DNA of 63,977 nt, the filler included, from Reticulomyxa filosa (taxonomy: Eukaryota; Protista; Foraminifera), in NCBI GenBank assembly GCA_000512085.1. It is 19 parts of 19 records of this genome, joined end to end, with 100 filler letters (N's around TTAATTAATTAA, not from the genome) between each part and the next. Parts side by side here need not be neighbours in the genome. Positions count along the whole stretch, not along the records: positions 1 to 6,508 come from ASPP01028917.1; 18 more parts are not named here. One strand, 5' to 3'. Below the pieces are notes generated by a model, which was not told where the DNA came from, ran no database searches, and saw only the letters and a program-made list of their open reading frames with translations. The number at the start of each line of letters is the position of its first letter. Position 1 is the first letter of the stretch. Both the position numbers and the translations under genes were made by a program. Positions 1 through 6,508 of the stretch are shown here, in pieces.

Positions 1-553
1 AATGTACTGGCAAATTTTCCAATACTCTTTAATTCAATATTTGTTATCGCGAATTAGTAAGAAACTACTTTGACAACACTTGTACTTAAAGAATTTAGAA
101 AAAAATTATTATTCTTGCTTTGAAGCAATACACTTGAAAATAATCAGGTACCACACAAATAATTAGAAAGTTACATTCGCAAAATTGTGGTTCATTTTGA
201 AAGCTTAAATGCTCTACAAACGACAATGTAGAAAACAAGAGAATTTGAAAGGAAGCTTCAACATAAATTTATCAACTATGATTGTTGATTGTATATTTTA
301 AACACTTTATCAGTATTTTGCTTTATCTAACGTCAATCACGGAATTAAAAAGTGAAAAATGTGATTTAGAAATATTATAAACATCTTTTATCAAAATCAT
401 CTTATCAATTAAACAAAAGTAAAAAAATGGTTGATGAAAACATACATTTTGATGAAAAAAAGTTCGTGTATATAGCCACTATATTTTTTGTATGCAAATT
501 GTACAAAAAAGAGGAACAGTAAGTGAGAAAAGTTGACTAGCTCCTCCGTGGCA

Positions 554-1524
554 TCACATAAACTGTAATACCTTGCCAGCAAAATCCATGATATCAACTA
601 AATCAGGTCCTTGCATTTTGACAGCATCAGCGATTAAGTCTTGATCGCTGATTGCCCTTTCCTTTAAGCAACTGGTACAACAAATGATCTGGCCATGTTT
701 GGACAGCAAGTTTTCGATCAATTCCTGCCAAGGTTTAAAAGTGCTGGACAATTTGAATTGGTTTTTCTCACGATATGATTTGGAAGCAAGCCACACACCA
801 TTGGCCATTAACACCAGGGTTGCGGTTTTGCCTTTTGCCGCGCCAGCGTTTACCAAATTTAAGGCCAGGCCCACTTTTTCGGGATTGTCTTCTCCATATG
901 ATAAAATCACAACCTTTCAAAATGCATTTTTTTGAAATTTTTTTTTGTCACTTTATATTGCTCCGTTAAAAAAAAATTTGGACAATGTACCCAGTCATCA
1001 TCTTTTGCAAATGGTTCCTCAAATGCTGCATAGCCTTTTTTGAGCGTGTAACAATCGTAATCTGTATTACTATTGTACCAACTTGTTGCCAAATCTGCTC
1101 GTGATCCACTGGAGCATATGAAACATACTTTCTTCTTATTTTCAAACACTTTCTTTGCCTCTTCGGATTTTCGCCAACCTTAAGGGAAAAAAAAGAAAAT
1201 TTTTATATTTTCTATAATTCTTTTTTCCACACGTATACAATAAAAAAAACTTGTGCTAAGAAGCAGCCCCATCGGCACGTTGACTACGTCACCAACTAAT
1301 TTTTTGTTATTGTCGCCGAACTCTTTTTCTTCGCGTAAGTCTATGCATACAAAATCTTCACGAAATCGTTGTAATTGGCGACGGGTTATCTAAAAATAAA
1401 TGAATATTTCACATTGTTAGAGTCTGCACACGCTCAAAGGTCAACTTACGTATTTAGTTGGAGCGAGTACTGATCCTGCACCCTTTGAATTAAACGCAGC
1501 AACTTCCTTACTTCCGTCGCACAT
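554..1524 (-). CDS. Rhodanese + DsrE/F-like (sulfurtransferase) fusion protein, 4 exons, about 250 aa
   Basis: Manual splice, all GT-AG and in frame. Exon 1 (1524-1450) MCDGSKEVAAFNSKGAGSVLAPTKY. Exon 2 (from 1389) ITRRQLQRFREDFVCIDLREEKEF...VVNVPMG, the rhodanese IDxRxxxE N-terminus. Exon 3 (about 1178-991) KVCFICSSGSRA...TLKKGYAAF, the rhodanese CxxGxR active loop plus the L-x-x-G-x-x-x-aromatic motif. Exon 4 (to 554) VVILSYGEDNPEKVGLALNLVNAG...LVLMANGVWLA...IICCTSCLKERAI, a DsrE/F-like fold with its conserved Cys. Confidence 0.85.
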
Positions 1525-1817
1525 GTTTTAGAAACTCTTTTGGCAGATAAAAGAACAATTAGATTCCAGAGCAAAGGGTTTTGAAAAGAAAAAGTTTTGT
1601 TTTGTAGTTTCAACACATTGCTGGAACATATTCTCATTTCATCATTGCTGAAATACCACTAAAAGGACAAAAAATAGTCTCTGTTCTTGAAAGGTTTTAC
1701 ACCAAAACTGTTTTTGCAGCGTGTACTGATGACCTCAACAATTTCTTGACAGACCCTTGCAAAAAAAAATAAATAATAATCACATTTACTCTTCCACAGG
1801 AGTATAAAGTCTGTGAC

Positions 1818-3034
1818 ATGACCACAAATCCAATTAAGGATCAGCCTGAATTTCGTCGTGTAAAATGTCAAAGTCGAGTGCAGTTGGATGCGTATTTCTT
1901 GCGTGACGTTAGTGCAGGAATTGAGGCATTTTTAAACGCAAACTGATGAGGTGATAAAAGCAAGAGCAAAAAAAAAAAAGGGGTGGAGGGGGAAAGGGGA
2001 TGGGACGAGGGGTAGAAATATTGTGTGAACAAGAGTTTGGCGAGAAGACAAAAAAAGCGAAAAGGGTAGAAAAAAAAAAACATAGATACAACATAGAGTT
2101 GTGCGGAATAATAATGTGTTACGAAAATGTGAAGACATTACATAAAACGGCAGACATAATCGACGAAGAGCCACACTTATATGTGGACATCGAATGCGAT
2201 TGGGTGATATTGATATTGGAATGCAATCGGTTGTATTCCGGGACGGTTTGCAGAGTGTCGAAAGACATACTAACGTGTCTGTTGTGCAACACGTTTAATG
2301 TGAGCATTCCACTGAGCGCGGAGTATATGAAACAGAACAAACTCGTGTTGGAAGATAGATCCGTCATTCCCTTTTTTTTGACGTCGGTGTCGTACCAAGA
2401 TCGAATTTTAATCTTGAAAGGGTCTCTCCAAAACATCGATCCGAACACTATCTTTGTGAGTAAAGGTATCGCAAGTTTGAGTGAAGAACTCGTCCCCGAA
2501 GATAACACCACACAAAATCCAAATAATGACAATGACAATCACGACAGTGATGACAGTGACGAAGATACCGACAACGAGAAAGACAATGGTATTCCTACTA
2601 CGTCCATCACACTACTACCGACCAACAACACTTTGGATCCACAGGACATTGCAACGATCCAACGTGCGACGGATAATGACAATGTTGATACTGATGCTAA
2701 TAGCGATGCTAATGATGCCAATACCGATGCTAATGATGCTGATGCTAATACTAATACTAATATTAATGCTAATGCTAATGCTAATACTAATGCTAACACC
2801 GATGCTAATGATAGCGATGATAGTGATGATAGCGACGACGATAGTGACAGTGATGACAGTGATGAGGATAAAAAAGAATCAGAAGTCAAAGTCGGTAATA
2901 CTCCCTCCAACACACAACACAACGCACCAGAAAAAACAGGGAAAAGGAAAAATAGCTTTGAGGAACAAAATCAAACTGATGATATCGTCAAAGTCACCGT
3001 TGAACCACCCCCCAAAAAACGTCGAAAGAATTAA
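1818..3034 (+). CDS. RPA43: RNA polymerase I subunit RPA43 (Rpb7-like) with acidic low-complexity tail; one frameshift near 1931-1937
   Basis: Exon 1 MTTNPIKDQPEFRRVKCQSRVQLDAYFLRDVSAGIEAFL[fs]KRKLMR splices (GT near 1951, AG near 2085) to YNIELCGIIMCYENVK..ADIIDEEPHLYVDIECDWVIL..GTV..TCLLCNTFNVSIP, which matches the A43 pattern. D/N-rich tail ends in NLS-like PPPKKRRK. Confidence 0.75.
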
Positions 3035-3334
3035 TCTTTTTTCCTATTCCACTCTCCCCCTTTTGTGACTAACTTTGTTGTTAATGCTAGTTTGACTTAA
3101 TTTGTACCTTTTTGTTGTTTTATTTTTCTTTTTAAGTGACACTTCTCTCATTGTTTTATGACAGTGTTCTTTGCTTCATACATCATTCCACAATCTTAAA
3201 CTTTTCTTCCAAAGAACTCTGCAATAGGCTTTGTTGTTAAATTATCCTTGAATTTTAGTTTTTTTTTTTAAGAAAACCCCAGCAAAATGAGAGCTTCAGA
3301 AAACTCTCCATTTTTATATTTTTATGCCGTACCA

Positions 3335-4006
3335 ATGCGTAAGTTTTCAGTTGTTGTTGCAGCTTGTCTCCCCCAATTGGGGGATTGCGATGAGAGGTAG
3401 GTTACCATGGAGGTTATCAGAAGATATACAGTACTTTAAGAAACTGACGAGAGATTGTTCGAACAAAGAACAAAAGCAAAACGCTGTTATTATGGGACGA
3501 AAAACCTGGGAATCAATCCCGCTTAAATTTAGGCCGTTGGATGAACGTTTGAATATTGTTCTGACGCGTTCTAGATCGCAAAGCACTCTTTCGTTGAAGT
3601 TGTAATTGTGTGATATACATATATTTTCATAATTAAGAAACAAATGAAGATAAAAAAAATAAATAAATAAGTGCTGAAAAAGTATTGGTTTTCAAGTCGT
3701 TAAATGAAGCACTGGATAAAATATATTGTTCTCCTTACCAAGAGAGAATAGAAAATATTTTTGTAATTGGTGGTAGTGAACTTTATGATGAGTGCTTCAT
3801 TCACGACCAGCTACAGTTTGTTTACTTAACAAAAATTTTCAAAGACTTTGAGTGTGACGCATATTAAACTACTTCAAGGCAAATAAAAACTGGACCGAAC
3901 AATGGGATGAATTGAAATTATCACCCATTCTCAAAGCCGAAGAAAAATTTGATGGCATTAGTGAGCTATATTACAATTCGTTCGATTGCAAAGAATTCGG
4001 CATTGA
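3335..4006 (+). CDS. DHFR: Dihydrofolate reductase, monofunctional; 2 exons, 2-3 single-base frameshifts (sequencing error or pseudogene)
   Basis: MRKFSVVVAAC..GIAMRGRLPWRLSEDIQYFKKLT, NAVIMGRKTWESIPLKFRPLDERLNIVLTR, IFVIGGSELY, VYLTKIFKDFECDAY. Frame breaks near 3370-3383, 3865 and probably 3974. Confidence 0.9.
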
Positions 4007-4661
4007 TTCTAATCATTTCTTACCTACAAGTACTTTTTTCTGTTCAATAAAATGAAATTTGAATTACTTTTGCGAACATTATTCTCTAAAAGTCATTTAA
4101 AATACAGATTGCAAAAAAAAAATAAAAGCTTGACAACATTAGCTATTGTTGTCAATTTCCTCACGTTTTCTTATTGAAAGTTCAACACAAAAATGCACTC
4201 TTTTGAGCAAAGCTTCTGCGAAAACAAAAATGAATTAAAAAACCAATCAAAAGATAAGAGGGAAAACAAATGAACAGTTTTAAGTAAAAATGCTCCAATG
4301 TTTCATTACTTTGCGAAAAATATTTAATATCAAAATTCGTACCAATAACAAAAAAATTTTATGTAATACTACTATCCAGATTGCAAATACAAATTTAAAC
4401 GTTTAAAAGAGACGTGTAAGATCAACTTTCGTACTAAAAAAACGACACGCCTGAGAAAGAAAAAAAAAATCCTTATAAACAAACATGGCACAAAAAGAAC
4501 AAAAGGAAAACGAAAATGATAAGCATGCCAATACATTGGTTGAACAATTGAGGAGTGATTTGCTAAAAATTCGAGGCAAAGGAGGTGCGGTATCTTGCTG
4601 TTTTTTTTTTCCGCAGTAACGGCATGTACTAAAGAAAAACAAAAATTTTTTGAATGTTCAA

Positions 4662-5273
4662 ATGGCGAATGCAGACGAGCGCAAGCGAGTGATTTTGTTA
4701 GGAGTTGACGCATCAGAATACAGTGTAAAAGCTGTAGAGTGGGCAAGCAAAAATATATTTCAACAAAACGATGTTTTAGTTATAATGACAGTTTGGGAAG
4801 AGCTCATTGACTTGTCCGCAGTAACGAATACCAGCATTGATGCCATTGGTAATTTTTAATTGTTATTTACAAAACAAACAAAAAAACAAGAACCTCCGAG
4901 TTCTTTCTTGCCGATGACGAATGCCATGTTTTGTGTGGGTCCCTTTTTTTTAAAAAAAGGTATGATAATAGCAGAACCAGAAGAAATTCAAAAATACAAC
5001 GAAGAGCATTTAAACAACGCAAAGAAACTGTTGATTTCGCTGTACAACGCATATTTGGGTAAAATGAAAGTACTGCCTTTGCTTGTTTCTTCGGCCAATC
5101 AAGGGAAATCGTACATTGGCAAGTTAATATGTGGAGCAGCGAAAGCCTTGGAAGTCGATTTGATCATAATGGGGTCACGAGGCTTGGGGAAAGTCAAAGA
5201 GTTTTTTGTGGGAAGTGTTTCCAAAAATGTTGTTGAGAATGCTCACTGTCCTGTTTTGGTTGTCAAATCATAA
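4662..5273 (+). CDS. Universal stress protein (UspA family), 2 exons
   Basis: ILLGVDASEYSVKAVEWA at the N-terminus; DLIIMGSRGLGKVKEFFVGSVSKNVVENAHCPVLVVK carries the ATP-binding USP motif. Confidence 0.93.
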
Positions 5274-5679
5274 TTCGCAAAGAATATAATTGATAAAATT
5301 GGTAAATACACAACACGAGCCGGAAAAAGCGTCTTGTGAAGACCTCCTTTTTTTTTTTGGCTCGTTGATTTTTATTCAGAAATTTCATTGCTCAACACCC
5401 AATAAACTTGAATGCTAATCAAACAACATACTATTTTCCCCTTGGTGTACAACAACAAGATCGGAAAAATTACTGACAATAAACTATTAACTTTGGAGAT
5501 AACAGATTTTTATATGAAAAGTCAAATTTTTGAAAGTATTCAAGCGTACATTTTTAGTGAACATTGAAAACTATCTAACAAATTTGACAACTAATGAACG
5601 TTTAAAAAGTAAAATTAAGCTGTGGTTTTGTGTATCCCTTTTTTTAAATGAATTTTTAGTATTTTAGTGGAGAATACAA

Positions 5680-6464
5680 ATGACCACTGATATACCCACG
5701 AGCCAAATCGAGGTAAAGATGCCACAAAATCGGACTTCTGCTGCCAGGGCTTCAGCAGTGACGGCAGGTTCGGACTTGCCAGACTTGTTTCCGCCAGAAA
5801 TAACACTGAAAGATAGCACCAAAAGAGCAAGACGCGTATCTTTGCCTGCTCAGGCTGGAAAAATGTATCTAAATTGAAATTTTTGTTGTATGCAATTAGC
5901 ATTATTTGTCGTTTGTACGTGAATGAATGAATTTCGTATCATAAGACATGTCGGGGCGTGGGGATGCAAAAAAAAACAGAGACCTTGGAGCAAGTGAGGA
6001 ATTCAGTGAAATCAGTTCCGGAGACCGATTGAAAATAGCACGTCGCATCGAAGATACTTTAGTGCAAGAGTATCACGCACATGATAATGAAACAGCGTTA
6101 TAAAAAAAAGGGGGTTTGTTATAAAAAAAAAAATAAAAAAGGGAACAAGTAAAAGAAAAAATTGGTGCGATATTGAAGATAGGTTTGAGCTTGGTGATAT
6201 TCTTGATTATTTAAACAGTGGAATGGATGTCGTGGTTGAGGACGATTTTTCGCTGTGCTTTCAGCGAAAAGAGTTGAGACCATGGAATTGGAATTTTTAT
6301 TTGTTCATTTTTTGGTGCATTGGAGTAGTGATCCGCTACGGTATTTTGCTCCCAGTTCGAGCAGTGATCATGGTAACGGGGATTTTGTTCGAGTGTTTTC
6401 TGCTTTGGCTGTTTCAGTACATATTTAAAAACAAAAATGAAAAAATCAAAGAAGCATGGGAAGT
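5680..6464 (+). CDS. GPAT9: Glycerol-3-phosphate acyltransferase GPAT9/GPAT3-4-like, 5' part (cut by contig end)
   Basis: VVEDDFSLCFQ..RPWNWNFYLFIFWCIGVVIRYGILLPVR closely resembles the plant GPAT9 segment DDSFTRCF..PWNWNIYLFPL..GVVVRYCILFPLR. Confidence 0.85.
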
Positions 6465-6468
6465 TATG

Positions 6469-6508
<40 letters not shown>

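Follow-up and report, generated by a model that had tools for sequence, protein, structure and literature searches.

Gene structure and surroundings

The window analysed here is a stretch of 63,977 nucleotides, filler included, joined from 19 parts of the Reticulomyxa filosa genome (GCA_000512085.1). Its first part (ASPP01028917.1, positions 1 to 6,508) carries a spliced gene on the minus strand. The features are listed in Table 1. The coding sequence, of 253 codons and a TGA stop, corresponds exactly to the span 554-1524. An earlier note, made from the DNA sequence without database searches, had described this span as three GT-AG introns that join a rhodanese domain, in frame, to a DsrE-like domain.

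Table 1. Coordinates of the rhodanese-DsrE gene, its parts and its intron-split neighbours.
Feature	Position	Strand	Length	Details
Coding sequence	1524..554	minus	762 nt spliced	ATG 1524-1522, TGA 556-554; four exons
Exon 1	1524..1450	minus	75 nt	start codon 1524-1522; Cys2 codon 1521-1519; 25-residue tail
Intron 1	1449..1390	minus	60 nt	GTAAGT...TTTTAG; three in-frame stops
Exon 2	1389..1251	minus	139 nt	N-terminal half of rhodanese; ends in phase 1
Intron 2	1250..1179	minus	72 nt	GTTTTT...CTTAAG; GC 0.19; one in-frame stop
Exon 3	1178..991	minus	188 nt	C-terminal half of rhodanese, including the active-site loop
Active-site loop CSSGSR	1116..1099	minus		in exon 3
Intron 3	990..914	minus	77 nt	GTACAT...TGAAAG; between the two domains; retention shifts the frame
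Exon 4	913..554	minus	360 nt	whole DsrE-family domain and stop (556..554); C-terminal LQFM
Cys cluster CCTSC	682..668	minus		C78 682-680; C79 679-677; C82 670-668
DHFR gene	3288..3867			intron-split
Usp-family gene	4650..5273			intron-split

The introns are AT-richer than the exons, with GC contents of 0.19-0.33 and 0.39-0.45 respectively, and each blocks read-through. Introns 1 and 2 contain stops in frame. If intron 3 is retained, the rhodanese frame is shifted and then reaches a stop. The start codon has A-rich surroundings and a stop lies two codons 5' of it. The frame of exon 4 is shut by a stop two codons before the first residue and has no in-frame ATG before residue 36. Hence, exon 4 is not a gene of its own.

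The window's exons were searched one at a time; the joined protein was not used as a query. In BLASTP comparisons with the homologue P0002, exon 2 aligned with residues 27-72 (E 5e-11, 48% identity) and exon 3 with residues 75-127. The two residues left between these alignments are residue 73 and the one whose codon intron 2 interrupts. The exon 4 alignment starts at residue 142, straight after the DDDW/DDDF end of exon 3. The matches therefore abut residue to residue on P0002, which begins with the same MCDGS as exon 1, and the homologues derive from transcripts. Using P0002 in tblastn searches, we also located introns in two related genomic contigs. The TARA scaffold L005 has introns at the positions of window introns 1 and 2, and contig L006 has an intron at the position of intron 1. 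At the rhodanese/DsrE junction both contigs have continuous coding DNA and no intron. Among the Trinity and MMETSP transcript assemblies there are family members with the entire fusion. The three in-frame GT-AG introns are thus borne out by the abutting exon matches, by the related contigs and by the stops and frameshift that the introns would introduce. Judged from sequence, the nuclear gene at this locus is intact, has four exons and encodes a real eukaryotic rhodanese-DsrE fusion. Since no obvious targeting peptide is present, the predicted product, of about 253 residues, is probably cytosolic.

The nearby DHFR and Usp-family genes are eukaryotic and split by introns, and the GC content of the rhodanese-DsrE gene equals that of its neighbours. 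Hence, contamination or recent foreign insertion is not supported. The eukaryotic setting described in the earlier note stands on these genes and on the matching GC content, but RPA43 and GPAT9, which it had named as the neighbours, were not confirmed by Pfam. Rfam and tRNA scans detected no RNA genes in the piece.

The two domains and their cysteines

Searched apart, exon 3 aligned with positions 53-100 of the Pfam Rhodanese profile (PF00581; E 0.0017), scoring 19.2 bits against a cut-off of 22.2. Exons 1 and 2 gave no Pfam match when searched singly, and a sequence search of the PDB with exon 3 returned noise only. Whole homologues pass the PF00581 cut-off of 22.2, with scores of 27.4 bits for P0001, 36.1 for P0005 and 43.6 for P0015. 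The six-residue loop CSSGSR fits the pattern C-X4-R, with Cys first and Arg last. The Cys is kept in 18 of the 19 full-length family members, P0031 having Ser, and the Arg is kept in all 19. A rhodanese fold was recovered by Foldseek in the P0002 model, which is that of a homologue and not of the window's own protein. The matches were 3GK5 (TM 0.74), TSTD1 (TM 0.71) and PDO-rhodanese fusions. On these comparisons, exons 2 and 3 can be read as one single-domain rhodanese in which the CSSGSR loop is intact. The claim of an intact active-site Cys was therefore upheld, both by the loop itself and by the homologues.

For exon 4, a search with a DsrE profile had been suggested in the earlier note as a check. 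The exon matched Pfam DsrE (PF02635) over positions 5-116 of 116, which is the whole model, with E 2.9e-13 and 50.4 bits (cut-off 22.7). An AF2 model of the exon, based on an alignment of 41 relatives, had a pLDDT of 97.7. Foldseek aligned this model with 3MC3 (DsrE3A; TM 0.84), 2hy5_A (DsrE; TM 0.77), 1JX7 (YchN; TM 0.75) and 2d1p_A (TusD; TM 0.73). The best 14 PDB matches were all DsrE-family or related chains, save one designed cage. A sequence-only search of the PDB with exon 4 found nothing. With a profile of the DsrE domain, 3MC3 was the best match (E 4.5e-10) and YchN scored E 3.5e-9. More specific models did not fit. There was no match to the TusD equivalog model, and the TusC model scored 14.7 bits against a cut-off of 94. 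The YedF model, TIGR03527, was unmatched by the window's exons, P0001, P0002, P0005 and P0016.

Residue C79 aligns with the active Cys of 3MC3, which is the Cys of its VCVQS stretch and marks the canonical DsrE/TusD active-site position. For DsrE proteins, the established active site is the Cys that comes first in the DsrE3A motif (PMC4175335). In the exon 4 model, C79 is the end of the strand formed by residues 75-79, and C82 lies within the next helix, at its start. All 19 fusions have this C-x-x-C pair. Across 41 sequences, bacterial ones included, C82 never varies and C79 is conserved in at least 90%. Conversely, C78 varies within the family, being C, A, L, G or M. The DsrE-like domain, the letters CCTSC and a Cys at the TusD/DsrE position were thus all present as originally described, but the conserved unit is C-x-x-C (C79 and C82) and not the whole cluster. 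The Cys-X7-Cys motif of DsrE3A is absent, Ala standing eight positions on from C79, and the linkage of DsrE3A to hdr/lipoamide genes has no counterpart in a eukaryotic genome.

A eukaryotic family of rhodanese-DsrE fusions

Exon 4 was searched against 1.84 billion cluster representatives and 90 proteins were found. Around 20 of these have lengths of 247-306 residues and match DsrE in their C-terminal half, and nine of the ten members scanned first with Pfam had both Rhodanese and DsrE. In all, some 20 divergent clusters carry the fusion. The named hosts are protists of at least nine genera (Rhizaria, Amoebozoa, Holozoa and Euglenozoa), and the fusion is also present in uncultured marine eukaryotes. 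Four genera are foraminiferal (Rosalina sp., Bolivina argentea, Nonionella stella and Globobulimina turgida). The Archamoebae are represented by Mastigamoeba balamuthi, the Holozoa by Creolimax fragrantissima, Corallochytrium limacisporum and Choanoeca flexa, and the diplonemids by Lacrimia lanifica. On metagenome contigs the fusion has eukaryotic neighbours, among them RNA polymerase II Rpb2, protein kinases, EF-hand proteins, Golgin and Kelch. The architecture had been put forward as undescribed in eukaryotes. It is present in these genera and metagenome contigs, but the literature searched holds no characterisation, and no account, of a eukaryotic rhodanese-DsrE protein. Two recent papers on foraminiferal metabolism name rhodanese and never DsrE. 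In databases, members bear automatic names such as 'tRNA 2-thiouridine synthesizing protein D', 'rhodanese-related sulfurtransferase/predicted peroxiredoxin', 'molybdenum cofactor sulfurase-like' and, for atlas clusters, 'putative peroxiredoxin'.

Family members are colinear. Their shared plan is a Met-Cys start, a tail of 25-35 residues, a rhodanese domain, a DsrE domain with C-x-x-C and an LQF-type C-terminus, and the window's gene conforms. The Met-Cys start itself was found in 17 of the 19 full-length members. The AF2 model of full-length P0002 (pLDDT 85.9, pTM 0.78) matched both the DsrE and the rhodanese folds, and a Foldseek search with it found no solved PDB chain covering both domains. 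The first 18 residues of this model have low pLDDT; hence, the tail bearing Cys2 is probably flexible. Twenty-two alignment columns are conserved in 17 or more of the 19 fusions; the window retains 20 of them, including eight of the nine invariant columns and both cysteines of the C-x-x-C pair. It deviates in having Thr where the PFKP motif of the other fusions has an invariant Pro, and Asp for a mostly conserved Arg.

In a maximum-likelihood tree of DsrE domains, one branch (support 87/75) has 21 fusion proteins on one side and 20 single-domain sequences on the other, and the window clusters with the foraminiferal sequences (100/93). The gene thus appears to sit in a foraminiferal subclade of a conserved, patchily distributed eukaryotic family, as judged from one short domain tree and shared intron positions. 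All three single-domain relatives with contigs examined lie in a bacterial gene context.

Two other accounts of the locus have to be weighed against this one. That the region is not one gene, but a pair of neighbouring genes, a pseudogene or contaminating bacterial DNA, is extremely improbable. A mechanical list of ORFs does break the region up. However, exon 4 lacks a start codon that could be used and its frame is shut just upstream, and relatives code the junction without interruption. The transcript assemblies hold the full fusion, the introns have eukaryotic GT-AG ends, and all exons are open, with conserved columns kept at the level given above. A recent horizontal gain from bacteria by Reticulomyxa, of an architecture otherwise unknown in eukaryotes, is also very improbable. 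It would accord with the overwhelmingly prokaryotic distribution of DsrE-family proteins, with the bacterial-type contigs of the nearest single-domain relatives and with the lack of a description of the fusion in the literature searched. Conversely, the fusion occurs with both its Met-Cys start and its LQF-type C-terminus across the named protist genera, and no bacterial rhodanese-DsrE fusion is among the 90 matches. GC content, as noted, does not set the gene apart from its neighbours. Because the eukaryotic fusions form one group, and because two intron positions are common to the window and L005, the fusion would not have been gained by Reticulomyxa alone; it is presumably old within eukaryotes or has spread among them. 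The recent horizontal acquisition proposed in the earlier note is therefore not supported.

A putative persulfide relay

With moderate confidence, we regard a single-chain persulfide relay as the most likely function of the protein. The rhodanese Cys would accept sulfane sulfur as a persulfide. The donor could be the persulfide of a cysteine desulfurase or a low-molecular-weight compound (thiosulfate, polysulfide or GSSH). The sulfur would then be handed to Cys79 of the DsrE domain, either inside one chain or inside a DsrE-type trimer. Cys82, which is invariant and lies three residues further on at the helix start, may assist or resolve. The conserved Cys2 of the tail may be an extra station or a regulatory site. 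The final acceptor might serve, for example, cofactor or tRNA thiolation, or persulfide detoxification.

Several observations bear on this scheme. In Mastigamoeba, P0081 combines the rhodanese-DsrE module with a cysteine desulfurase domain of the SufS/CsdA type (class V aminotransferase), in what is an unvalidated gene prediction. This fusion suggests a cysteine desulfurase as the sulfur donor. In the bacterial relatives P0010 and P0012, DsrE is fused to TusA, and TusA occurs on either side of DsrE among bacterial relatives. Sulfur exchange between the rhodanese-like protein Rhd442 and DsrE3C has been described (PMC11094781). In the same work, the second Cys of the DsrE3C CC pair binds sulfur and DsrE3 proteins are trimers (PMC11094781). 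Passage of sulfane sulfur from the rhodanese Cys to the DsrE Cys, which had been proposed in the earlier note, is thus a reasonable function given the conservation of the cysteines and the fusions to TusA and desulfurase. Counted against the relay are the Ser that replaces the rhodanese Cys in P0031, the position of C-x-x-C at a helix start, which also fits redox chemistry, the bacterial relative beside selD-selB-selA and the window's Thr for Pro. A choanoflagellate and a diplonemid show that the family is also found in aerobic plankton. Hence, a role restricted to detoxification of sediment sulfide is less likely, and general sulfur delivery likelier.

The bacterial gene contexts raise the idea that selenium is trafficked instead. 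On this view, the protein could be the eukaryotic equivalent of bacterial YedF and deliver selenium to selenophosphate synthetase in the form of a perselenide or selenotrisulfide. On several contigs the bacterial relative P0024 is within 5 kb of selD, selB and selA, and P0004 stands after an Rdx (SelW-like) gene. YedF has CGXC in its DsrE-like domain and a statistical link to SelD (PMC5322559). The TusA/DsrE fusions of bacteria would also fit, as would the SufS-type domain of the Mastigamoeba fusion, which is of a class that also holds selenocysteine lyases. We nevertheless consider selenium trafficking unlikely. The P0024 neighbourhood is not repeated at P0108, P0025 or P0045, which belong to the same bacterial subclade, and the eukaryotic copies examined have no selenium gene nearby. 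In addition, TIGR03527 is matched neither by the window nor by eukaryotic members, and the match of two bacterial members is weak and spans about 30 residues. Less probable still is a thiol-disulfide or persulfide reductase. In that case, the C-x-x-C would alternate between its dithiol and disulfide states, for instance on persulfides or polysulfides, while the rhodanese domain would merely bind the substrate. The motif is invariant and sits where a strand ends and a helix starts, P0031 keeps it without a rhodanese Cys, and source annotations and atlas clusters include the word peroxiredoxin. Against this, C79 is placed where DsrE proteins canonically bind sulfur, 18-19 of 19 members retain the rhodanese Cys and Arg, and the partners found in fusions, TusA and cysteine desulfurase, are sulfur-transfer partners and not reductases.

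The Met-Cys start, on its disordered tail of about 25 residues, could add a further layer to the persulfide relay. It might be (a) an oxygen- or NO-sensitive N-terminal Cys degron of the PCO/ADO type, or (b) a swinging arm that forms a third station. We offer these as tentative readings, and unlikely ones. If the degron reading were true, the relay protein would build up only in hypoxic conditions or with sulfide present, in keeping with the oxygen-free life of foraminifera and Mastigamoeba. If the swinging-arm reading were true, persulfide would be carried out of the rhodanese-DsrE core to client proteins. Under either reading, eukaryotes would have a sulfur-trafficking system that has gone unrecognised and that includes its own arm for control or delivery.

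To our knowledge, DsrE-type sulfur carriers have been studied in prokaryotes only, in dissimilatory sulfur oxidation and in tRNA thiolation via TusBCD. The family described here is a conserved eukaryotic lineage of such carriers, always fused to rhodanese and with four conserved cysteines. Its hosts include foraminifera from sediments that are anoxic and sulfidic, and an amoeba that lives anaerobically. It points to a eukaryotic route for handling sulfur, and possibly selenium, that is absent from present pathway maps. The family includes genetically tractable hosts, Creolimax and Corallochytrium, so its function is testable, and the desulfurase fusion of Mastigamoeba provides a concrete hypothesis for the sulfur donor.

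Comparison with known systems

The Reticulomyxa gene is best regarded as one more member of an existing, uncharacterised family, and the family as a probable variant of the sulfur-relay kind. Among the closest known parallels are DsrE3A of Sulfolobales (3MC3) and DsrE3C of Hyphomicrobium denitrificans, which resemble exon 4 in fold (TM 0.84 for 3MC3) and in the position of the active-site Cys. DsrE3C shares its CC pair with the window and with several members, and it exchanges sulfur with a rhodanese-like protein. However, both belong to prokaryotic dissimilatory sulfur oxidation, where they are separate proteins with links to sHdr, TusA and lipoate-binding proteins. Moreover, DsrE3A has Cys-X7-Cys, whereas the eukaryotic family has C-x-x-C, a rhodanese fusion and no operon.

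Escherichia coli YchN (1JX7; TM 0.75, E 3.5e-9) is like the family in its C-x-[ST]-C arrangement (CKTC) and is of similar length. Conversely, it is a bacterial, single-domain protein with neither rhodanese nor Met-Cys tail, and as a DsrE-family protein of unknown function it is no mechanistic guide. YedF (TIGR03527) is also a two-domain, sulfurtransferase-like fusion with C-x-x-C in its DsrE-like domain (PMC5322559). Its N-terminal domain is TusA-like, whereas that of the window is a rhodanese, and its model is unmatched. No eukaryotic homologues of YedF were detected (PMC5322559).

The TusBCD and DsrEFH heterohexamers (2D1P, 2HY5) have in common with the family the DsrE fold (TM 0.73-0.77) and the logic of a Cys-persulfide relay, but they need three paralogous subunits, and the window's exons miss the TusD and TusC models. 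Other rhodanese fusions of sulfur metabolism, found as Foldseek matches, are the PDO-rhodanese 5VE3, the CoADR-RHD 3ICT and MOCS3. These likewise fuse a single-domain rhodanese to a persulfide-handling partner; in the protist family, that partner is a DsrE-type carrier.

Cysteines of the Rhd-DsrE family

In nearly all family members the protein begins with Met-Cys, and small residues come next (MCSTSK or MCDGS; alignments A2 and A3). In the predicted structure, the Met-Cys sits on a tail of ~25 residues that is modelled as disordered. The cysteine of this start could serve as an N-terminal degron or, alternatively, as the cysteine of a swinging arm. In P0031, a homologous fusion protein from a JGI metagenome, the rhodanese active-site cysteine is replaced by serine (the loop reads SSSGGR). 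Despite this change, the C-x-x-C is retained. Hence, not every member needs the rhodanese cysteine.

Coordinates of features in the window and in related sequences
Feature	Location	Strand	Remark
Met-Cys start	window 1519-1524		family alignment A2/A3
344-residue ORF	window 2000-3034	+	long Asn/Asp/Ala/Thr/Ser low-complexity tract; basic C-terminus
DHFR gene, apparent 1-nt frame change	window 3340-3400	+	inside CCCCC...GGGGG runs
'GPAT9' ORF	window 6223 onward		truncated by edge of piece
In-frame stops	L006:4540-4600		precisely across C-x-x-C region
P0024 locus	L007:1-5372		selD, selB, selA, dtd upstream of P0024
SufS/CsdA-type cysteine desulfurase domain	P0081 residues 599-1015		predicted gene model

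Genes flanking the fusion

The earlier note named RPA43 and GPAT9 as neighbours of the fusion gene. Pfam finds no domain in the 344-residue ORF, so the RPA43 label is unconfirmed. Similarly, the ORF called GPAT9 has no significant Pfam match. In the DHFR gene, the first frame encodes the conserved N-terminal strand up to LPQLG and the next frame resumes with IAMRGRLPW. The change could stem from a sequencing error in the homopolymers, from a very short intron or from a genuine frameshift.

In L005 (a TARA scaffold) and L006, both of them related genomic contigs, genes for a Kelch-repeat protein and for Golgin_A5 come after the Rhd-DsrE gene; this local synteny was not seen in the window. The L006 copy, which is interrupted by in-frame stops, has Ile rather than Met as its first codon, and the coverage of the contig is 0.73. 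This copy may be a pseudogene, may contain a further intron or may reflect an assembly error.

Partners in Mastigamoeba and in bacteria

In P0081, a 1025-residue predicted protein of Mastigamoeba balamuthi, the Rhd-DsrE module is joined to a cysteine desulfurase domain. The intervening ~340 residues matched no family.

The closest bacterial relative is the single-domain protein P0004, encoded on contig L004 after a gene for Rdx (SelW-like). The P0004 gene has a 4-nt overlap with a gene for a 258-residue protein, which has only weak matches to membrane proteins. For P0024, another bacterial single-domain relative, the genes upstream on L007, L009 and L010 are selD, selB, selA and dtd.
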